A stretch of DNA of 21,798 nucleotides from Octopus sinensis (Eukaryota). The notes under the pieces were generated by a model. It saw only the letters and a program-made list of their open reading frames with translations, did no database searches and was not told the origin of the DNA. Both the position numbers and the translations under genes were made by a program. The stretch lies in assembly GCF_006345805.1 (NCBI RefSeq), contig NW_021823638.1, positions 1-21,798 on the forward strand, in the 5' to 3' direction. Positions 11,376-21,798 of this stretch are shown one piece after another (within the stretch, counting starts at the first letter, position 1; the number at the start of each line of letters is the position of its first letter).

Positions 11376-13406
11376 AGATATATCATCATCATCATCATCA
11401 TTGTTTAACATCCGTTTTCCGTGGTAGCACGGGTTGCACGAAAATATACATAAGTAATATTGTAGGCACGCCAACATGAGTATCTGTTCGAATGGACTCT
11501 ACTGCGAATGTTTAACCCAAGAGAACATCCTGTAAGTAATTAACGACGCAGAGGTGCATCCGATTAATTGCGAGCAGGGGATCGAACCCCTACCATCTTA
11601 TAGCAACAGGACCAGCAGACCAGGTCTGGTTTCGGGCTATTCCTGCCACTGCTCAGTACTGGACACCTCATCGCTATCTGTGGAGATGGGATGTATATAA
11701 AAAGTGTATATAATAAAGTATGTATGCATATAAGAAACCTGTGTAGATATATTTGTTCAGAAGAAATGAGTTCGATGTTAGAAGTGAAATATATTTCTGG
11801 AATATATGTAGTTCACTGTGTGTCAACCAATTTCTATGATGTATCAGGGTCAAGACAAACATTTATCAATGTATGTATGCATGTGTGTGTATACTTGTAT
11901 GTGTGTGTGTGTGTGTTTCTGCGTCATTTAACTACACAAAATGCTGTATGTATGTAATTGTTCAAAGAAGAGTTTCTGCTGTACTCTTGGTAGTTACTGA
12001 TGTATCTTATAATATTCTCTATTCCGAACATGTAAATAATGTAATATTTGTTATAAATGAATGTTATTGATTGGATGTTTCTGTTTTGTCCACAGATGTT
12101 TATTGTGCAGAAATAAAGCGGCCACAACAAAAGTCCATCCATGTGTGGACACTTGTAATATGTAAGGATGTTCAAACGTTACACTTCAACGATGTCTGAA
12201 GTGCGGGAAACCTGTAACGAGCAGAACTGGAGATGGTAAGAAAATCTTTGCTGATCTGTCTGTTTGTCCTGCTTGTCCCATTGCCCTTATTGTGTAGAAT
12301 AATATACTTCATGTTGTTATGTAGACAGAGGTCTGCCATAATCTGGCAGATTTATGATAAAAGGTGTTCCTAGTGTCTGTTCTCTGTAATAGTATATCTC
12401 TCACACACTACATCCACTAAACATTGACCTTATCCAAGTAGGAAACATGTCACACTTCAAGAGGTTTGTAGTCTGCAACATAAAGATAATGGACGATTCT
12501 GCAAGATAATTAGTGAGTAACTGAAGTATCAATAAATCTCCATCAACACTATAATTAATTATGAGTTATTAGAAGATAATTAAATACAACAGTACTAACA
12601 AGGACATCAGTGTCATCTTTGGTAAAGTATTAAATTTAGTAGAATATTTTAAAGGAGTAAAATTATTTGTCACTAGTTTGAGAGACTTTAACACACAATT
12701 CCATGTTGTTATGTTTGTAATTGGTGGGTATTAAGGCTAATAGAGACAGTTTTGTTTGTCAAGCAGCCAGATCATGAAACCTTCAAATATATCCTGAATG
12801 AGATGACATTCTGGTGAACTGTGAAGTTAAAATTAGGGATTATCAGCAACAATGTTTAACAAAGAGATTAGGTGTATGTTTCTCCTTCTTGAAGTGGTTG
12901 TGACATGTGTTTGTTGTTATATCTTTTATAAATAAATATGTTGACACTGGAATTAAACAGGTTGTTAGTGAAGATCAGGGTTTTGAAAATGCAATAGATT
13001 TGGCATAGATATAAGCAAGGAAACCAAAACCTACAGATTAACTGTTATTAGGTGATAATTAAGTGATATAATTACAGCATTGTTAGATTATGTAGGATAT
13101 CTTAACAGAGAGAGGAAATTTACAAGATCAACTAGAGTTCGTTTTGGAGCTAAATATTGGCTATTACATGGTCCGCGTTGAAAGTATAAAAATATTGACC
13201 AAAGCATTATGATCGCTGTTGGCCATTGATGGTATGAATGTTTCTCATTAATAAAATATAGATTATTAATAAATATAAAGGGATTGTGCTATAAATAAAT
13301 ATAAAACTTGGAGATACATATTTCAGAGAGTCCAAAGTTTGAAGAGAAGGGAGTGCAGACTGTGGCAGAGACAGTTGATGAGTTTAAAATTAGAGATCTT
13401 AATTAA
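667..13406 (+). CDS. Spliced gene model (5' end upstream of window): ankyrin-repeat + RING protein, Mind bomb/MIB2-like E3 ubiquitin ligase; frameshifted as assembled
   Basis: Six AG-bounded exons with consistent phases (0-2, 2-0, 0-0, 0-2, 2-1, 1-stop). After indel repair they join into [52 protein letters not shown]|[12 protein letters not shown]|[70 protein letters not shown]|[59 protein letters not shown]|CLLC..PCGHxVICKxC..CLKC..TGD|[15 protein letters not shown] followed by RING is the Mind bomb C-terminal architecture, but the N-terminal MIB/HERC2 and ZZ domains are not in the window, so no symbol is given. Confidence 0.85.
1205..1300 (+). mobile_element. Highly degenerate SINE remnant
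   Basis: B-box-like GTTCAAATCC at 1240-1249 and CTGGGGTCAATATAATC at about 1272-1288, similar to the 3161 fragment. Confidence 0.4.
1351..3171 (+). repeat. 61-bp direct repeats (1351-1411 and 3111-3171) flanking the (GAT)n array
   Basis: 57/61 identical; the last 44 nt (AGAAAATAAATTGTG...TTACGTTCAG) are identical; offset 1760. Confidence 0.9.
1461..3103. repeat. 1.64-kb imperfect (GAT)n trinucleotide array with GAG/AAT/GCT variants, intronic
   Basis: Directly visible; it is the source of the poly-M, poly-D and poly-I/H ORFs in the track. Confidence 0.97.
3161..3260 (+). mobile_element. Degenerate tRNA-derived SINE fragment (second family)
   Basis: TTACGTTCAGAGTTGAATCC (degenerate B-box), then GGTCAACTT...GTTGATAAAA...TACCAG...ACTGGGGT; recognised by eye as a common octopus SINE body. 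Confidence 0.5.
3560..3596 (+). CDS. Exon B (37 nt): completes ankyrin repeat, (E)[12 protein letters not shown]
   Basis: Acceptor TATTACTTTCAG ending 3559; donor GTTAGT at 3597; phase 2 to 0 matches both neighbours and supplies the second helix of the GDTPLH repeat. Confidence 0.82.
3913..4040 (-). mobile_element. Degenerate SINE 3' fragment
   Basis: TGCGGCCATGCTGGGGCA...ATCGATCCCAG matches 9390-9440. Confidence 0.6.
4256..4566. repeat. (TCTA)n/(TCTG)n compound microsatellite
   Basis: Direct inspection. Confidence 0.95.
4896..5412. mobile_element. MITE-like element with long imperfect terminal inverted repeats
   Basis: 4896-5020 is the imperfect reverse complement of 5275-5412 (e.g. CCTGTTAGCCTAAGACCTCTTCAAAATATGGA vs TCCATATTTGGAAGAGGTCCTAGGCCAACAGG); no coding capacity; AT-rich ends, TSD not resolvable. 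Confidence 0.75.
5578..5708. repeat. (TATG)n-(TG)n compound microsatellite
   Basis: Direct inspection. Confidence 0.95.
5835..6110. repeat. Foldback/palindromic element with a ~100-nt near-perfect central hairpin
   Basis: 5962-5988 vs the reverse complement of 6037-6063 matches 24/27; pairing continues inward (5986-6008 with 6014-6036); weaker outer arms (TTGACCC..TTGCATCG at about 5843 vs CGATGCAACACGGGTCAA at about 6084). Confidence 0.7.
6701..6907 (+). CDS. Exon C: ankyrin repeats ([13 protein letters not shown]; [18 protein letters not shown]), disrupted by two small deletions
   Basis: AG at 6699-6700, GTAAG at 6908. The entry frame hits TAA at 6791-6793; the ankyrin consensus resumes in a shifted frame from 6790 ([12 protein letters not shown]...) and returns to the entry frame at 6893 (DLLNE). 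This implies -1 near 6787 and -2 near 6890. Confidence 0.88.
7714..7920 (-). mobile_element. Tc1/mariner transposon 3' remnant (transposase C-terminus + TIR-like end)
   Basis: The minus strand of 7902 to 7790 reads [34 protein letters not shown], the mariner C-terminal LPxRW..VxxxGxY motif, with one stop and one frameshift. It is followed by AAAAAACTGCTTCATTTATGAGATGAC (TIR-like, 7714-7742). Confidence 0.78.
8482..8657 (+). CDS. Exon D: terminal ankyrin-like segment and linker ([18 protein letters not shown])
   Basis: AG at 8480-8481, GTAAGT at 8658; 58 uninterrupted codons + 2 nt; phase 0 to 2. Confidence 0.9.
9368..9788 (-). mobile_element. tRNA-derived SINE with CORE-like domain, near full length
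   Basis: Minus strand: head AGGCGCAGGAG..., B-box GGTTCAATCCC (9726-9736), CORE-like GCACCTTGGGCAAGTGACTT (about 9698-9717), a (TA)n/(TG)n spacer, then a 3' body shared with 131-325 and 3913-4040. Resembles described octopus tRNA-SINEs; the exact family is not assigned. Confidence 0.82.
9896..10053. repeat. (TAT)n-(GAT)n-(AAT/AAC)n compound microsatellite
   Basis: Direct inspection. Confidence 0.93.
10054..10770. mobile_element. Interspersed non-coding repeat bounded by (AAT)n tracts, family unassigned, first 137 bp tandemly duplicated
   Basis: GC-richer block between AAT microsatellites; 10054-10190 and 10191-10327 are near-identical. Recognised by eye as an abundant octopus repeat; no TIR or ORF seen. 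Confidence 0.6.
10782..10821. repeat. (GAA)n microsatellite
   Basis: Direct inspection. Confidence 0.93.
10822..11250 (+). mobile_element. CR1/L2-group LINE 3' coding remnant
   Basis: Frameshifted reading ...[15 protein letters not shown]...[36 protein letters not shown]...* (TGA 11245-11247) resembles the C-terminal FK..LD.FL..IPD.P..PGY...NSL motif of CR1-like ORF2. Confidence 0.65.
11319..11372. repeat. (TA)n microsatellite (another at 3866-3911)
   Basis: Direct inspection. Confidence 0.93.
11384..11438 (-). mobile_element. Short RTE 3'-tail fragment
   Basis: (CAT)n followed by TTTAACATCCGTTTTCCGTGGTAGCACGGGTTG, matching the tail end of the RTE copies at 15683 and 20298. Confidence 0.65.
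12096..12235 (+). CDS. Exon E: C3HC4-type RING finger, locally frameshifted
   Basis: AG at 12094-12095, GTAAGA at 12236. CLLC at the start and C..CLKC at the end are in one frame. The central PCGH-xVICK-xC is recovered by removing 2 nt at about 12145-12146 and adding 1 nt at about 12153 and 1 nt at about 12168. Uncorrected, there is TAA at 12163-12165. Confidence 0.88.
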
Positions 13407-13970
13407 TTTCTATAGATTTTACATTCACCTCAGCTATTTTGCGTATTAGAATGGTGGAGAACAAATCCCATTTCTAATTTCCATTTGAAAGGTTAGCTCT
13501 AAAGTAATTGTATTAAAAATATGAAATTTCATAAAGTCATGGTTAACGTGTTTGGTAAAATGGATAAATTAAAAGCCACAATAGAGTTAATATTGTCTTC
13601 TGGAAGAGGGAACTATAATTCTTTTTTTACGTGTAAACTCCTAAGTTAATAAGATAGTTGTTTGTTTTTCTACTGAGATTTTTCGTAAGTTTTCTGATAG
13701 GTTATTCTTGATGTTGTTATGTAGCCAGATGTCTGTCGTAATAGTTTGTATTTTCTGGGGTTGTGTACCACGAATGTCTCTGGTTAGAATACATTTTGTA
13801 GTTGCAAATTAGAAAATTCTAATTAAATGTTAACACTGTATAAGAATATTTATCATGAACTTAATTTTATTAAATGTTAAATTTAGTATTCAACCGTGAA
13901 CATCTGTTTATATTTAATATATATTGGTGCTTATACAAAATATACGATCATAAATTGAATATGACTTGAA
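12300..13970 (+). repeat. Older, diverged paralogous unit(s) of the array
   Basis: GTTGTTATGTAGACAGAGGTCTG (about 12313) vs GTTGTTATGTAGCCAGATGTCTG (about 13713). About 12960-13600 aligns by eye to about 14950-15660, and about 13510-13970 aligns to about 16280-16750. Confidence 0.75.
13327..13406 (+). CDS. Exon F0: probable terminal coding exon (E)[25 protein letters not shown]
   Basis: TTTCAG acceptor ending 13326; phase 1 matches the RING exon; TAA at 13404-13406; clear paralogy to the exons at 15354 and 17817 including the acceptor context. Confidence 0.72.
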
Positions 13971-14367
13971 TACACAAATCCTTGTTTGTAACTATATATA
14001 ATATACACTTATTACATTGTTTGAACAGGATTTACCATCCATATAGTCATTCTTTTTCTCACTCTTGTTAGATTTTAGATGATATTAATGCTAAAAGAGG
14101 CACTGTTTTCTGAGTGTTTCACCCTTTGGTCTTGATTGTTGCGTTCAAATTATTTAATGAAAGATAGTCATTGTTATTTGACCAGGAAATGAATTAATGA
14201 TTAGTATTTGGCAGTGGACTTGGTTATATCTTTCTTCGTTTGCTCATGGAACTACCATAATATTAGCTGTGCTGAGACACAATCATATTCATAGTAATGA
14301 AGGTTATATGTTCTTTACTCAGATTATATACAATCTATATTGATATCTAGTATTGCACCGTCAAGCA

Positions 14368-14968
14368 CAGTGCCATTGTATCACATATGTACCCAATTAT
14401 CATGATAATTAATAAGCTATAATTCATTAACTCTCTTACATTTGTATGTCTGAAATGTAAACATATTTTGAGATAGGGACATCGTGTACCCTCACCTTAC
14501 ATTTTATATCTTGTTAGGGATCATGGTGGGGAAAGAGTGTATGGTTTCAAGGTTGTTGGGGATGGTTTTTAGGGGACAGATTGTGTTCAGGGGGGAAGGT
14601 ATGCACATAAAGGACAAGTCTTTATGGGCGCAGTTTTACTTAATTAGAGAGGAATGTTGATTAGTGAATTCAGTACCATTGCATCACATATATACCCAAT
14701 TATCATGATAATTAATAAGCTATAATTCATTAACCCTCTTACATTTGTATGTATGAAATGTAAACTTATTTTGCCATAGGAACATCGTGTACCCTCACCT
14801 AATTTTATATCTTGTTAGGGATCATGTTGGGAAGGGTGTATGGAATTTGGCTTGTGGAGATGATTTTTAGGGGACAGATTGTGTGCGGGGTGGAGGGTAT
14901 GTACATAAAGGACATGTCTTTATGACCTCAGTTTTACTTAATTAGAGAGAATGTTGATTAGTGAATTC
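14368..14968 (+). repeat. Internal ~300-bp tandem duplication within the first recent unit
   Basis: CAGT(G/A)CCATTG...TTAGTGAATT occurs at 14368-14670 and 14671-14968; single copy in the other units. Confidence 0.9.
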
Positions 14969-15353
14969 TAGAGATGAGAGGACTGTGCCATGCCATAATT
15001 TGGCAGTTATAGAAAAGAAAGACAAAGCTAAGAGAAAACTCTTATCAATTGTTAATTAAATGAGATAATTGGTACATTGTTAGAATATTTAATGTGTTCT
15101 TAGAGAGACAGAGAGAGAGAGAGAGAGGGAGAGGGTGGATATAGGAATGTTAGTCTGTTTTATTGTGGACATATTGAGCTATTACATGGGACCACTGTAG
15201 AAAGTACAGAAATATTGACCAAAACCATAATGGTCAACAGTTGACCAGTAACAACAGGAATTGAATGTCTCACAATAACAAGATAGAGTTTAATAAAAAT
15301 AAGGATACAGACATTTTATTTTTAAATGTAAAACTTGGAAATATTTATTTCAG

Positions 15354-15431
15354 GGGCTCCAAAGTTTGAAGACAGGTGTGTACAAACAGAGGCTACATGT
15401 CAGGAATTAGGGGCTGCATCTCAGGCAATTG
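15354..15431 (+). CDS. Exon F1: duplicated symmetric (phase 1-1) 78-nt exon, (G)APKFEDRCVQTEATCQELGAASQAI
   Basis: TTTCAG acceptor ending 15353, donor GTGAGT at 15432, no stop in the phase-1 frame; paralogous to F0. Use in transcripts is not demonstrated. Confidence 0.62.
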
Positions 15432-15682
15432 GTGAGTATAAAATAATAGTTCCCAATTGATTTCTGTAAGGTTTTCTTCCCCCGAGTATATTGTGCTTGA
15501 AAGAATAACTGAAAACAGCTTCCATTCCTATTTTCCAATTGAACGATTATCTGTATAAAATTGAATTAAAGATATCGATTTACTGAGAGTTTATGAAATA
15601 CCCATTGAGGTTAATGCTGTTGGTAATAATGTTCAAATTAGAAGACACAATAGAGTTAATTTTGTCAATTGGTCACAGAACT

Positions 15683-16279
15683 CATCATCATCATCATCAT
15701 CATCATCATTTAACATCCGTTTCTTATGGCGGCATGGGTCGGACGATTTCACTGGCAAGGCAGTAGGCTGCGCCAGGCTGCAATGTGATCTGGCAAGGTT
15801 TCCACATATGTATGCCATTCCTAATGCCAACCACTCCGAGAGTGTGGTGGGTGCTTTTTACGTGCCACCGACACAGGAGCCAGTCGGGGTGGGGGCTGGC
15901 ATCGACCACATTCGGATGGTGCTTTTTACATGCCAGCGGCACAGGGAACTAGTCAGGCGGCAGTGACAAGGACCTATGCTTCTATGGTACTTATAACGTG
16001 ACACAGGAACAGGTGCCAGTCAGGCGGCACTGGCATCGGTCACAACTACAATTTCCGTTTTGATTTCGATCTTGAATTGCTTTTGATTTTTCATTTCTGT
16101 TATTGCCTGGTGGACTATGATGAAAACGAGGGGTTTAGGAATGGTCCCTAGTGAACTCCTACTTCTATCCGGAATTCTTCACTATACTCATTGCCAATCC
16201 TCACCTTACTACAGGGCCTCTTCAACTCTTATAATCGCTCGTCAATCCCTAGTTTCCGCATTAGCTGTAAAAAGGATTC
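15683..16279 (-). mobile_element. Internally deleted RTE LINE: RT-domain fragment fused to 3'UTR and (GAT)n tail
   Basis: The minus strand of 16097-16272 reads MRKLGIDERL*...SKVRIGNEYSEEFRIEVGVH*GPFLNP.VFIIVHQAIT, a degenerate GVxQGxxLSPxLF RT motif. 15683-16095 matches the 3'UTR/tail of the 18145 copy; same left flank (GGTCACAGAACT vs GGTCATGGAACT). Confidence 0.8.
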
Positions 16280-17816
16280 TATTAAATATTCAACTGAAAT
16301 TTCATAAAATCAAGGTTAACGTGGTTGGTAAAATGGTTAAATAAGAAGACATAATAGAGTTAATGATGTATTTTAGGACAGATAACTAAACATTTTGTTG
16401 TTTATTTGTAAACAGGTGAGTTAACGAAAAGATTTCTTTCTTTTACTCTAAGGTCTTTCCTAAGTTTTCTCATAGGTTATTGTTGTTGTTGTTGTTGTTG
16501 TTATGCCAGATGTCTGTCATGACATGTTGTTTAGGTACTACCCTGAATGTCTCAGGTCAGAATAACTTTGTTATAAATTAAAGAAATTAAAAATCAAATC
16601 TCTAAGATTATAAGTATAATGATCATTAACGTTGATTAAATATTAAATTTAGTATTGAACGGTGAACATGTTTTACATTTAACAAAATATTGGTGTTGAC
16701 ATGAAATACAAAGATATGATTAAATATGAGTTCCCTTGTGTGACTTGATCTCACAAATCCTTGTTTGTAACTATATATATTATACACTTATTACATTGTT
16801 TGAACAACATTTACCATCCATATAGTCATTCTTTTTCTCACTCTTGTTAGATTTTAGATGATATTAATGCTAAAAGAGGCACAATTTTCTGAATGTTTCA
16901 CCTTTGGTCTGATTGTTGCGTTCAAATTATTTAATGAAAGATAGTCATTGTTATTTGACCAGGAAATGAATTAATCATTAGTATTTGGCAGTGGACTTGG
17001 TTATATCTTTCTTCGTTTGCTCATGGAACTACCATAATATTAGCTGTGCTGAGACACAATCATATTCATAGTAATGAAGGTTATATGTTCTTTACTCAGA
17101 TTATATACAATCTATATTGATATCTAGTATTGCACACGTCAGCACAGTGCCATTGTATCACATATATACCCAATTATCATGATAATTAATAAGCTATAAT
17201 TCATTAACTCTCTTACATTTGTATGTATGAAATGTAAATTTATTTTGTCATAGGGACATCGTGTACCCTCACCTAAACTCTTATATCTTGTTAGGGATCA
17301 TTTTGTGGAGATGATTTTTAGGGGACAGATTGTGTGTGGGATGGAGCGTATGCACATAAAGGACATCTTTATGACCTCATTTTACTTAATTAGAGAAGAA
17401 TGTTGATTAGTGAATTCTAGAGATGAGAGGACTGCGCCATGCCATAGATTTGGCACAGTTATAAGAAAAGAAAGACAATGCTAAGAGAAAACTCTTATCA
17501 AGTGTTAATTAAATGAGATAATTGCAACATTGTTAGAATATTTAATGTGTTTTTAAAGAGAAAGGGAGAGAGAGAGAGAGAGAGAGACAGAAGTGAGGGT
17601 GGATTTAGAAATGTTAGTCTCTTTTATTGTGGACATATTGGGCTATTACATGGGACCACTGTAGAAAGTACAGAAATATTGACCAAAACCATAATGGTCA
17701 ACATTTGACCATTAACGACAGGAATTGAATGTCTCACAATAACAAGATAGAGTTTAATAAAAATAAGATAAAGAAAGTTTATTTTTAAATGTAAAACTTG
17801 GAAATATTTATTTCAG

Positions 17817-17894
17817 GTGCTCCAAAGTGTGAGGACAGGTGTGTACAAACAGAGGCTACATGTCAGGAATTAGGGGCTACATCTCAGGCAATTG
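17817..17894 (+). CDS. Exon F2: duplicated symmetric 78-nt exon, (G)APKCEDRCVQTEATCQELGATSQAI
   Basis: TTTCAG acceptor ending 17816, donor GTGAGT at 17895; 4 nt differences from F1 (2 amino-acid changing, 2 silent). Confidence 0.6.
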
Positions 17895-18144
17895 GTGAGT
17901 ATAAAATAATAGTTCCCAATTGATTTCTGTAAGGTTTTCTTCCCCCGAGTATATTTTGCTTGAAAGAATAACTGAAAACTGCTTCCATTCCTATTTTCCA
18001 ATTGAACAATTATCTGTATAATAATTGAATTAAAGATACGATTACTGTGAGTTTATGAAATACCCATTGAGGTTAATGCTGTTGGTAATAATGTTCAAAT
18101 TAGAAGACACATAGAGTTAATTTTGTCATTTGGTCATGGAACTA

Positions 18145-19050
18145 ATCATCATCATCAACATCACAATCGTTTTACGTCCGTTTTTTATGGTGGCATGGAT
18201 TGGATGATTTCACTGGCAAGGCAGTAGGCTGCGCCAGGCTCCAAAGTGATCTGGCAAGGTTCCACATATGTTGCCATTCCTAACGCCAACCACTCCGAGA
18301 GTGTGGTGGGTGCTTTTTACGTGCCACCACCGACACAGGAGCCTTCGGGTGGGGGCTGGCATCGACCACATTCGGATGGTGCTTTTTATGTGCCACCCCG
18401 CACAGGGAACTAGTCAGACGGCAGTGACAGGACCTATGCTTCTATGGTACTTATACGTGACACGGAACAGTTGCCAGCCAGGCGGCACTGGCATCGGTCA
18501 CACTACAATGTTTGAATGGTACTTATTATGTGCCACCGGCACGGGTGCCAGCCAGGCGGCACTGGCATCGGCCATAATTACAATTTCCATTTTGATTTCG
18601 ATCTTGATTTGATTTTGATTTGTGATTTCTGGTTTTTGGTTTTACTTGACTCGGAAATTCTTCTCAAGCGCAACTTATCACTCTGTGATTCAAGGGTACT
18701 TTTAAAAAGGGCTGGTTATGCGCCACTGGTATATGCTACAGCTCTGATCTCACTTCACTTGCCGAGTCCTCTTAATCACGTCATATTTCTAGAGGTCTCT
18801 GTCGCTTGCCATTACCTCTGTGAGGCCCAACGTTCGAAGGTCGTTTCACTACGTCATCCCTGTCTTCCTGGGCCACTCCTTTCCACGGTTCCTTCCCTGT
18901 TAGGGTGTAACACTTCTTCCCACACTCTCTCTCATCCATACACATGACCATACCAGTGCTGTTGTCTCTCCTGTACACCACATCTGATGCTTCTTATGTC
19001 TAACACTTTCTCTCAGGCCTCTTCACTCTGCCTTGTGTACACACTGACAT
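18145..19050 (-). mobile_element. 5'-incomplete RTE-clade LINE: ORF C-terminus + 3'UTR + (GAT)n tail
   Basis: The minus strand of about 18770-19050 reads, with frameshifts, LREK.DIRSIRCGVQER..HWYGHV..MDE...KKCYTLT..G..G...PRKT.DDVVK.DLRTLGLTE, i.e. the WxGHV and degenerate RGRPRKTW motifs of RTE C-termini. It continues into a 3'UTR with internal sub-repeats and a (CAT)n tail at about 18145. Confidence 0.82.
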
Positions 19051-19718
19051 CGTTGCGTTCAAATTATTTAATGAAAGATAGTCATTGTTATTTGACCAGG
19101 AAATGAATTAATCATTAGTATTTGGCAGTGGACTTGGTTATATCTTTCTTCATTTGCTCATGGAAAACCATAATATTAGCTGTGCTGAGACACAATCATA
19201 TTCATGTAATGACGGTTATATGTTCTTTACTCAGATTATATACATCTAATATTGATATCTAGTATTGCACCGTCAAGCACAGTGCCATTGTATCACATAT
19301 ATACCCAATTATCATGATAATTAATAAGCTATAATTCTTAACTCTCTTACATTTGTATGTATGAAATGTAAGCTTATTTTATCATAGGGACATCGTGTAC
19401 CCTCAGCTAACATTTTATATCTTGTTAGGGATCATGGTGGGGAAAGAGTGTATGGTTTCAAGGTTGTTGGGGATGTTTTTTTAGGGGACAGATTGTGTGC
19501 GGGGTGGAGGGTATGCACATAAAGGACATGTCTTTATGACCTCAGTTTTAATTAATTAGAGAGGAATGTTGATTAGTGAATTCTAGAGATGAGAGGACTG
19601 TGCCATGCCATAGATTTGGCAGTTATAAGAAAAGAAAGACAAAGCTAAGGGAAAACTCTTATCAAATGTTAATTAAATGAGATAATTGGTACATTGTTAG
19701 AATATTTAATGTGTTCTT

Positions 19719-19752
<34 letters not shown>

Positions 19753-19972
19753 GGTGGATATAAGAATGTTAGTCTGTTTTATTGTGGACATATTGGACTA
19801 TTACATGGGACCACTGTAGAAAGTACAGAAATATTGACCAAAACCATAATGGTCAACATTTGACCATTAACAACAGGAATTGAATGTCTCACAATAACAA
19901 GATAGAGTTTAATAAAAATAAAGATAAAGAAAGTTTATTTTTAAATGTAAAACTTGGAAATATTTATTTCAG

Positions 19973-20047
19973 TGCTCCAAATGTGAGGACAGGTGTGTAC
20001 AAACAGAGCTACATGTCAGGAATTAGGGGCTGCATCTCAGGCAATGT
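19973..20047 (+). pseudogene. Exon F3: degraded copy of the 78-nt exon
   Basis: Relative to F2 it lacks single Gs (CAGTGCT, CCAAATGT, ACAGAGCT) and the donor is garbled (GCAATGTGGAGT vs GCAATTGGTGAGT). It is either a pseudo-exon or consensus error. Confidence 0.6.
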
Positions 20048-20296
20048 GGAGTATAAAATAATAGTTCCCAATTGATTTCTGTAAGGTTTTCTTCCCCCGA
20101 GTATATTGTGCTTGAAAGAATAACTGAAAACAGCTTTCTTTCCTATTTTCCAATTGAACAATTATCTGTATATAATTGTATTAAAGATATCGATTTACTG
20201 TGAGTTTTTGAAATACCATTGAGGTTAATGCTGTTGGTAATAATGTTCAAATTAGGAAGACACCATAGAGTTAATTTTGTCAATTGGTCACAGAAC

Positions 20297-20297
<1 letters not shown>

Positions 20298-20327
<30 letters not shown>

Positions 20328-20903
20328 TTAACACATCCGTTCTTATGGCGGCATGGGTCGGACGATTTCACTGGCAAGGCAGTAGGCTGCGCCAGGCTGC
20401 AATGTGATCTGGCAAGGTTTCCCCACATATGTATGCCATTCCTAATGCCAACCACTCCGAGAGTGTGGTGGGTGCTTTTTACGTGCCACCGACACAGGAG
20501 CCAGTCGGGGTGGGGGCTGGCATCGACCACATTCGGATGGTGCTTTTTACGTGCCAGCGGCACAGGGAACTAGTCAGGCGGCAGTGGCAAGGACCTATGC
20601 TTCTATGGTACTTATAACGTGACACAGGAACAGGTGCCAGTCAGGCGGCACTGGCATCGGTCACAACTACAATTTCCATTTTGATTTCGATCTTGAATTG
20701 CTTTTGATTTTTCATTTCTGTTATTGCCTGGTGGACTATGATGAAAACGAGGGGTTCAGGAATGATCCCTAGTGAACTCCTACTTCTATCCGGAATTCTT
20801 CTTCACTATACTCATTGCCGATCCTCACCTTACTACAGGGCCTCTTCAACTCTTATAATCGCTCGTCAATCCCTAGTTTCCGCATTAGCTGTAAAAAGGA
20901 TTC
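20298..20903 (-). mobile_element. Internally deleted RTE LINE, near-identical duplicate of 15683-16279
   Basis: Same tail, UTR, RT fragment and flanks; copied as part of the tandem unit. Confidence 0.8.
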
Positions 20904-21798
20904 TATTAAATATTCCACTGAAATTTCATAAAATCAAGGTTAACGTGGTTGGTAAAATGGATAAATAAGAAGACATAATAGAGTTAATGATGTCTTTTAG
21001 GACAGAGAACTAAAACATTTTGTTGTTTATTTGTAAACAGGTGAGTTAACGAGAAAGATTTTGTTTCTTTTACTACTAGGTCTTTCCAAATTTTCTCATA
21101 GGTTATTGTTGTTGTTATTGTTATGTAGCCAGATGTCTGTCATGACATGTTGTTTAGGTACCTACCCTGAATGTCTCAGGTCAGATAACTTTGTTTAAAT
21201 TAAAGAAATTAAAATCAAATCTCTAAGATTATAAGTATAATGATCATTAACTTGATTAAATATTAAATTAGTATTGAACGGTGAACATCTGTTTGCATTT
21301 AAACAAAATATTGGTGTTGACATGAAATAAAAGATATGAATTAAATATGAGTTCCCTGTGTGACTTGATCTCACAAATCCTTGTTTGTAACTATATATAT
21401 ATATACACTTATTACATTGTTTGAACAACATTTACCATCCATATAGTCATTCTTTTTCTCACTCTTGTTAGATTTTGATGATATTAATGCTAAAAGAGGC
21501 ACAGTTTTCTGAGTGTTTCACACCTTTGTTCTTGATTGTTGCGTTCAAATTATTTAATGAAAGATAGTCATTGTTATTTGACCAGGAAATGAATTAATCA
21601 TTAGTATTTGGCAGTGGACTTGGTTATATCTTTCTTCGTTTGCTCATGGAACTACCATAATATTAGCTGTGCTGAGACACAATCATATTCATAGTAATGA
21701 AGGTTATATGTTCTTTACTCAGATTATATACAATCTATATTGATATCTAATAATGACTGAGAACAGGTTCCAATGCTAGATTTCATTTGAATGCTTAG

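Follow-up and report, generated by a model that had tools for sequence, protein, structure and literature searches.

The stretch of Octopus sinensis DNA analysed here, 21,798 nucleotides (nt) of contig NW_021823638.1 and in the following called the window, contains on its + strand the 3' part of one gene, which belongs to an Octopus-restricted family of proteins composed of ankyrin (ANK) repeats, a RING domain, a linker and a Death domain. We found that the linker of this family is built from small cassettes, which are, as comparison with sister loci supports well, genuine symmetric exons that can be included in any number, and that the copy in the window has been disabled and is most likely a pseudogene. 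A first-pass annotation of the same DNA had proposed a working RING ligase with an expandable C-terminal tail of motifs for LC8/DYNLL, a hub protein. Our explanation as a whole, which covers the family, the origin of the array, its splicing and the damaged copy, is in our judgement probable, and the LC8 mechanism is an attractive hypothesis rather than a finding.

The family was identified by a protein search with a stop-free piece of the window gene model as query, which returned O. sinensis and O. vulgaris proteins named 'MIB2-like' at 73-84% identity. It was then collected by further protein searches and by a scan of 1.84 billion representative proteins, in which the lower matches were generic ankyrin proteins. 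The resulting set comprises about 90 clusters, and those looked up are without exception from O. sinensis, O. vulgaris or O. bimaculoides; publicly available annotation already includes the gene models. Complete family proteins are 450-550 amino acids (aa) long and start with a methionine directly before the ANK block. After the RING they carry 0 to 7 cassette peptides, which were seen in the linkers of 46 or more proteins, followed by a conserved domain of 90 residues.

This C-terminal domain is a Death domain, as Pfam, a profile search and a structure model all indicate. Pfam PF00531 (Death) matches P0003 with 33.5 bits (cut-off 22.6), and a profile built from ten copies of the domain matches the death domain of RIPK1 at 8.5e-9 and also those of ankyrin-3, PIDD, CRADD, Fas and FADD. 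In the AlphaFold 2 model of P0064 the ANK, RING and Death parts are folded, the last as a bundle of helices at residues 292-371 with a predicted local distance difference test (pLDDT) score of 81-91, and the linker between RING and Death domain (residues 160-290) has a pLDDT of 28-56, which predicts disorder. Because the cassettes are followed by Death-domain exons in intact relatives, the array encodes a disordered linker between RING and Death domain, and not the appended tail that the first-pass annotation had assumed.

In Mind bomb proteins (MIB1/MIB2) an ankyrin block is likewise followed by a C3HC4_3-type RING, and this shared combination is the reason why databases name the octopus proteins 'MIB2-like'. 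Pfam scans of the complete proteins P0005, P0003, P0027 and P0048, however, matched only Ank families, zf-C3HC4_3 and Death, and found none of Mind bomb's MIB/HERC2, ZZ or Mib-repeat domains. The octopus proteins moreover have a single RING instead of two or three, and their Death domain is absent from Mind bomb. Strictly speaking, they are thus no Mind bomb proteins, in agreement with the earlier impression that they depart from the canonical type. Literature searches on this family, or on MIB2 in octopus, yielded no paper describing the family or its cassette array, and no described family with the order ANK-RING-linker-Death was found in the literature. Family members are furthermore mosaic, with at least three RING types joined to the same cassettes and Death domain.

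From position 13327 to its end, the window is made up of tandem units, which measure 2027, 2463, 2155 and at least 1827 nt and are 82-96% identical to one another over their alignable parts. Compared as a whole, units share 88-96% identity, a repetition far beyond chance. All lie on the + strand, and each opens with a small exon-like segment, F0 to F3. Unit U0 (13327..15353) is older and more diverged and contains an internal 303-nt duplication (14368-14507 / 14671-14810); it is followed by U1 (15354..17816), U2 (17817..19971) and U3 (19972..21798), which is cut by the window end and is 95.8% identical to U1. A SINE-like (short interspersed element-like) sequence, which begins with (TCA)n-TTTAACATCCGTTT, is found at 15677-16110 in U1, 18139-18631 in U2 and 20300-20731 in U3, and was duplicated along with these units; U0 does not contain it, a partial copy lies at 11382-11441, and U2 additionally has a unit-specific segment at 18632-19048. 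Searches of the window for tRNAs and Rfam families gave zero matches, the SINE-like element included.

The first-pass annotation had assigned one small phase-1 exon to each complete unit, which is correct for two of the four segments. F1 (15354..15431) and F2 (17817..17894) are intact 78-nt phase 1-1 cassettes on the + strand with a tttcag| acceptor and a |gtgagt donor, exactly as had been described, and encode G-APKFEDRCVQTEATCQELGAASQAI and G-APKCEDRCVQTEATCQELGATSQAI, respectively. Joined in phase 1 to the ...TGD-G at the end of the RING exon, F1 gives GAPKFEDRCVQTEATCQELGAASQAI and F2 gives GAPKCEDRCVQTEATCQELGATSQAI. The F1 peptide is also coding, in identical form, in P0003, P0005, P0024 and P0034, as is GAPKCEDRCVQTE... 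of F2 in P0014, P0019 and P0025. F3 (19973..20045, + strand), already recognised as degraded, is dead: four bases were removed by deletions of 1-2 nt, a stop is reached at codon 5 in phase 1, and the donor has changed to GTGGAGT, out of register. F0 (13327..13407, + strand), a relic of the short cassette type that had been counted as an exon, is dead as well, since its donor position reads G|ATGAGT, as opposed to G|GTGAGT in all other units, and no GT yields an in-frame exon, so that it can only run on to the TAA at 13405-13407. F1 and F2 thus combine symmetric phase, a length that is a multiple of three and usable AG and GT, which F0 and F3 do not, and they are the only cassettes in the window that are still formally spliceable.

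The use of the cassettes in intact genes can be read from two sister loci, L002 on O. sinensis contig VCDQ01005649.1 and L001 on O. vulgaris OX597817.1. L002 is the locus closest to the window, with which it is collinear including the introns, at about 94% identity and about 3% substitutions. Its gene has 12 RefSeq isoforms, which contain 0, 1, 2, 3 or 4 cassettes (two of 26 aa, one of 19 aa and one of 17 aa) in nearly every combination, and in a further O. sinensis gene the isoform numbers run up to X22, with lengths that step by cassette size. The claim that any subset of cassettes can be spliced in without a frame shift is borne out by these and other genes. The F0 homologue of L002, which is 100% identical to F0, is included in 0 of the 12 isoforms. 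A different L002 cassette, m4 (ENRTFEDKVTQTLAEPV; 52690-52750), is included in RefSeq isoforms despite its donor G|TTGAGT, which is either an assembly base error or a non-canonical site that is used.

The layout of the sister loci corresponds to that of the window. In L001, the RING exon is followed by cassettes spaced 2.1-2.7 kb apart and then by two Death exons, and this spacing, which L001 and L002 share in their exon maps, is also that of the window. The proposed variation in unit copy number also holds, both among the proteins and between loci: units of the 26-aa type number three in the window and two in L002, and the array therefore changes in copy number. The Death exon has no match anywhere in the window, and the exon order in L002 and L001 leads us to expect the Death exons of the window gene 3' of position 21798; further cassettes, together with these exons, would lie beyond that point.

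When all cassette types are aligned with Death exon 1, cassettes and exon prove to belong to a single family of units. The intron end AAAACTTGGAAATATTTATTTCAG is common to all cassette types and Death exon 1, the donor context GGTGAGTATAAAATAA is common to the cassettes, and homology extends to the exon bodies: AGAGTCCAGTTCTGAAGGAGAGGGATCTTCTGAGAGTGGCTA of Death exon 1 matches AGAGTCCAAAGTTTGAAGAGAAGGGAGTGCAGACTGTGGCAG in F0, and ESPVLKERDLLRVA of Death exon 1 has an F0 counterpart at the protein level. The 26-aa type reads [EG]APKFEDRCVQTEATCQELGAASQAI and the 17-19-aa types include VCPKSEDKAVQAVVESV, and some family linkers also hold motif-free units, such as EAPTRGKSEPTSSTSQPV, or PSTSQHE repeats. 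Between diverged cassette types, identity averages 86% over the 30 nt upstream of the exon and 46% over the exon bodies, and this better preservation of the intron ends is what would be expected of regulated cassette exons. In our reading, genomic units of 2.0-2.8 kb, arrayed in tandem, encode the family linker; a unit carries a single phase 1-1 cassette exon (51, 57 or 78 nt), and the units descend from copies of the one in which Death exon 1 lies. With equal splice contexts and a 1-1 phase, the spliceosome could include any subset of cassettes, copy number may also shift by unequal crossing-over, and each cassette would add 17-26 residues of disordered, acidic chain between RING and Death domain.

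Upstream of the array, the exons of the window gene, all on the + strand, join consistently in their splice sites and phases, and they differ in their state. The ankyrin-repeat exon A (667..821), with matches to Pfam Ank, Ank_2 and Ank_4 at E 1e-14 to 1e-17 and both splice sites present, has an open reading frame and aligns to L002 at 90.5% identity with zero indels. The 37-nt ankyrin exon A2 (3560..3596), recognised by homology to L002 16288-16320 and flanked by ttcag|...|gttagt, brings exons A and B back into phase. Exon B (6701..6907), an ankyrin exon aligned to L002 37384-37593, has lost its function through two deletions relative to L002, of 1 nt and 2 nt, between which the frame is out of register, and in-frame stops occur at 6791, 6794, 6812 and 6851; its two pieces, searched apart, gave weak Ank_4 matches. 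Exon C (8482..8657), the last of the ankyrin region, is intact, with splice sites and 100% identity to L002 and P0001.

The C3HC4_3-type RING exon (12096..12235), defined by its translation and by alignment to the intact L002 exon, ends in phase 1 (...TGD G|gt), as the first-pass annotation had it, but is not the intact exon that was assumed there. It contains an in-frame TAA at 12163-12165, and its core PCGHLVICKGC is broken by +GT, -1 and -1 indels relative to L002, with the C-G-H register gone; the uninterrupted Cys/His pattern C-x2-C...C-x-H-x2-C-x2-C...C-x2-C is absent from it. Pfam found no RING match in its two pieces, which were searched apart and are too short, and its identity as a RING exon rests for this reason on the intact sister exon in L002, whose longest isoform, P0048, matches Pfam PF13920.

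The introns and exons of this upstream part show several further features. A (GAT)n microsatellite of 1.6 kb and about 548 copies (1461-3103) fills much of the intron after exon A and is found at the matching place in L002. Exons A and A2 are 90.5% and 82% identical to L002, below the flanking introns (92-97%), and nearly all of the differences change the amino acid, a pattern that suggests that the ankyrin surface is under diversifying selection or that paralogs have undergone gene conversion. L002 contains, from exon A2 to exon B, about 17.8 kb (17182-34946) without counterpart in the window (at about 4449), the result of an insertion or a deletion in one of the two lineages. The intron that precedes the RING exon holds a 137-nt unit as a tandem duplicate of 95% identity (10053-10327). 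The RING-exon region (11740-12469) is only 65% identical to L001 47885-48572, whereas the flanking introns and tandem units are 89-92% identical.

The stop and the three indels of the RING exon, the frameshifts of exon B and the loss of F0 and F3 together indicate that the window copy is disabled and probably a pseudogene, and the working ligase that had been proposed for this locus is not encoded here as the sequence stands. Relative to L002, whose exon B and RING exon are intact, the coding exons of the window contain 5 indels in 715 nt, about 1 per 100 nt, which equals the rate in introns and fits a loss of constraint. Gene death moreover appears to be common in the family, since decayed paralogs are frequent: RING exons are read out of frame in the P0007, P0094 and P0107 models, and such exons occur in many paralogs of three annotated genomes. 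The gene could instead be intact in the animal, as a working member of the family with at least two usable cassettes, if the stops and frameshifts were assembly indel errors in a repeat-rich region. Several observations speak for such errors and against a pseudogene: each of the five lesions is an indel at a short repeat (TGTG, CC, GGG, CCCT), the frame-breaking indels sum to -3 and 0 within exons and thus to multiples of three, and 1-nt deletions number 32 in the window as opposed to 13 in L002, with a patchy density. In addition, three exons (A, A2 and C) and two cassettes (F1 and F2) are intact. Because of the repeats, the sums and the excess of 1-nt deletions, a long-read assembly error deserves serious consideration, yet with coding indels as dense as those of introns and two cassettes decayed as well, we regard it as rather unlikely.

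The LC8 motif of the TQT class is eight residues long and is defined by the anchor [T/V/I]-Q-[T/V], together with D/S at -4 and a basic residue at -3. The cores of F1 and F2 (EDRCVQTE) and of F0 (EEKGVQTV) read as motifs of this type, and the first-pass annotation was right to point to them. Validated LC8 binders with a VQT anchor are SON (RCVSVQTD), MAST1 (RHQSVQTE) and ZFPM1 (SDKGVQTP), and gephyrin (EDKGVQCE) and BMF (EDKATQTL) provide the ED[KR]x[TV]Q context (Jespersen et al. 2019, PMC6607443, Table S4). The cassette core EDKVTQTL is one residue apart from the BMF motif, and the F0 core resembles those of gephyrin and ZFPM1. We built a position-specific scoring matrix (PSSM) from the 70 cellular binders of the same table, with viral entries excluded. 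It assigns 12.4 bits to EDRCVQTE, 9.4 bits to EEKGVQTV, 14.2 bits to EDKCVQTE and 17.1 bits to KDKETQTQ; the validated binders have a leave-one-out median of 14.6 bits and a 10th percentile of 9.4 bits, so that the cores of F0, F1 and F2 score within the binders' range, and random 8-mers score 12 bits at a rate of 1.5e-5. Among 9,811 distinct 8-mers of the family proteins, the top six by this matrix are all cassette cores.

The pattern of change between cassettes also points to the motif. Across a set of 30 cassettes, any two of which differ at over 4 of 17 positions, the columns V(-1), Q(0), K(-3) and T(+1) carry the most information. V-Q-T is derived relative to Death exon 1, which reads L-L-R at this place, and two cassette types have shifted to the canonical TQT (KETQTL and KVTQTL). 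The information in the core columns and the derived state of V-Q-T favour a functional motif. In intact family members, the conserved K/R-x-V/T-Q-T core would then dock the LC8/DYNLL dimer, and the number of cassettes would determine how many LC8 dimers could join two chains in the manner of a zip. We offer this predicted docking role tentatively, and from sequence it is possible rather than likely that LC8 binds the cassettes with VQT and TQT, at the least. That splicing and unequal crossing-over of cassettes set LC8 valency, and thereby control the stiffness of the linker and the parallel pairing of chains, coupling the RING to the Death oligomeriser, is more doubtful still.

A number of results weigh against this docking role. 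The PSSM fails to separate binders from anchor-containing non-binders, whose median is 9.4 bits and whose maximum is 15.4 bits. The motif had been ascribed to the array throughout, and VQT, TQT or SQT is indeed present in 40 of 73 distinct cassettes, but this set was gathered with a motif-seeded hidden Markov model, which inflates the apparent conservation. Q is lost in 17 of the 73 (23%; VKT, VKK and others), a further 13 have a non-canonical +1 residue (VQA, VQM, VQR), and both 26-aa cassettes of the intact L002 gene read VKK. Many octopus cassettes thus do without Q, whereas nearly all validated binders in Table S4 of PMC6607443 have it at the anchor position. In seven young 26-aa units, substitutions amount to 6.6% in the exon and to 5.3-5.7% in the intron, so that the exons are not conserved above their flanks, the very outcome that the first-pass annotation had named as refuting its proposal. 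Differences between young 26-aa cassettes are about 8 non-synonymous to 3 synonymous. The sole hint of constraint in the young units is that the six intact 78-nt copies have zero indels, with about 1 per 100 nt in their flanks. Further motif readings, of a TRAF2-type [PSAT]x[QE]E (T-C-Q-E in 26-aa cassettes) and of a SUMO-type psi-K-x-E (V-K-K-E and V-K-T-E from Q-to-K variants in P0001, P0022, P0105 and others), were set aside because these motifs are too degenerate, and both count as weak leads.

The same observations can be read in other ways. The cassettes could be a passive spacer, which sets the length or flexibility of the linker between RING and Death domain and in which K-x-V-Q-T is a frozen remnant of Death exon 1 without a partner. 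The intron-like speed and neutral-looking non-synonymous to synonymous ratio of the young cassettes, the loss of Q from nearly a quarter of distinct cassettes, the linkers with motif-free units and PSTSQHE repeats, and a conservation that is strongest at the intron ends and not in the exons are all consistent with such a role. Evidence against a mere remnant comes from V-Q-T and K(-3) as the most informative columns of diverged cassettes, from a V-Q-T that was not inherited from the L-L-R of the Death exon, and from two cassette types that have moved towards the canonical TQT and not away from it. With evidence on both sides, we treat the spacer, too, as a conceivable explanation that we would not yet call likely. 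Taken literally for this locus, the first-pass proposal of a working ANK-RING ligase, whose expandable C-terminal LC8-binding tail tunes RING dimerisation, draws on the intact and in-phase F1 and F2, on a motif that fits validated LC8 binders and on the variation in copy number between loci, but it is improbable in view of the TAA and three indels in the RING exon, the two frameshifts in exon B and the Death domain that makes a linker of the cassettes in intact relatives. Death domains oligomerise on their own, and no extra dimeriser is therefore required, which also counts against such a tail.

The cassettes might, finally, be an annotation artefact, if prediction software had joined repeat-borne open frames without real splicing. 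Cassette use as described here is that of RefSeq models of the sister loci, a search for transcript-derived (Logan/TSA) cassette proteins gave genome-annotation proteins only, and the exons of the young units are, as noted, no better conserved than introns; these points tell against genuine exons. Nevertheless, cassettes are present in three independent annotations (RefSeq O. sinensis, RefSeq O. bimaculoides and ENA O. vulgaris), and the NCBI pipeline derives alternative isoforms from transcript alignments. One cassette was annotated despite a non-GT donor, a site that an ab initio predictor would not choose. Together with the freedom from indels of the six intact copies and with splice-site contexts that are conserved far above the exon bodies, this makes an artefact very improbable, and we retain the interpretation of the cassettes as genuine exons.

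Compared with known systems, the octopus linkers combine familiar features in an unfamiliar arrangement. The multivalent LC8 clients ASCIZ/ATMIN and Nup159 resemble the cassettes in that short [DE]-[KR]-x-[TV]-Q-T motifs lie in a disordered stretch; the octopus motif repeats every 17-26 residues, and its binding is a candidate property. Bim, BMF and gephyrin are single-motif LC8 clients. Unlike in ASCIZ and Nup159, valency in the octopus proteins would come from alternative splicing and from the gene-level copy number of cassettes; to our knowledge, valency in those two proteins is not known to vary by either. The C-terminal 90 residues of the octopus proteins match the death domains of RIPK1, ankyrin-3, PIDD and CRADD, and ankyrins likewise combine ANK repeats with a death domain. 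What distinguishes the octopus proteins from ankyrins and adaptors is a RING between ANK block and Death domain and a cassette linker before the Death domain. Phase-symmetric exons that encode disordered modules are a general principle (PMC3632108). The octopus 1-1 exons conform to it, as they encode disorder, are tandem-duplicated and can be freely inserted or skipped, but their array is very young and still expanding, with its 2-kb units identical at 88-96% over their whole length, and its cassettes can be traced to exon 1 of the adjoining folded domain.

Multivalent LC8 clients are known, as are splicing that adds or removes short linear motifs and the tandem duplication of phase-symmetric disorder exons. 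If the cassettes do bind LC8, these three known things would meet in one compact system, in which the valency of a hub-protein client is written in a still-expanding array of near-identical cassette exons. Isoform counts would then give the valency directly, so that a relation of motif number to function could be put to the test. The window locus, as a damaged copy, is unsuited as the model gene. Irrespective of LC8, the 'MIB2-like' proteins are really an ANK-RING-linker-Death family, which is large, restricted to Octopus and subject to fast turnover, and it shows a disordered linker born from duplicates of a folded domain's first exon. Should LC8 docking prove true, octopuses would possess in this lineage-specific family a splicing-coded multivalent LC8 client, which may act in innate immunity or cell death.

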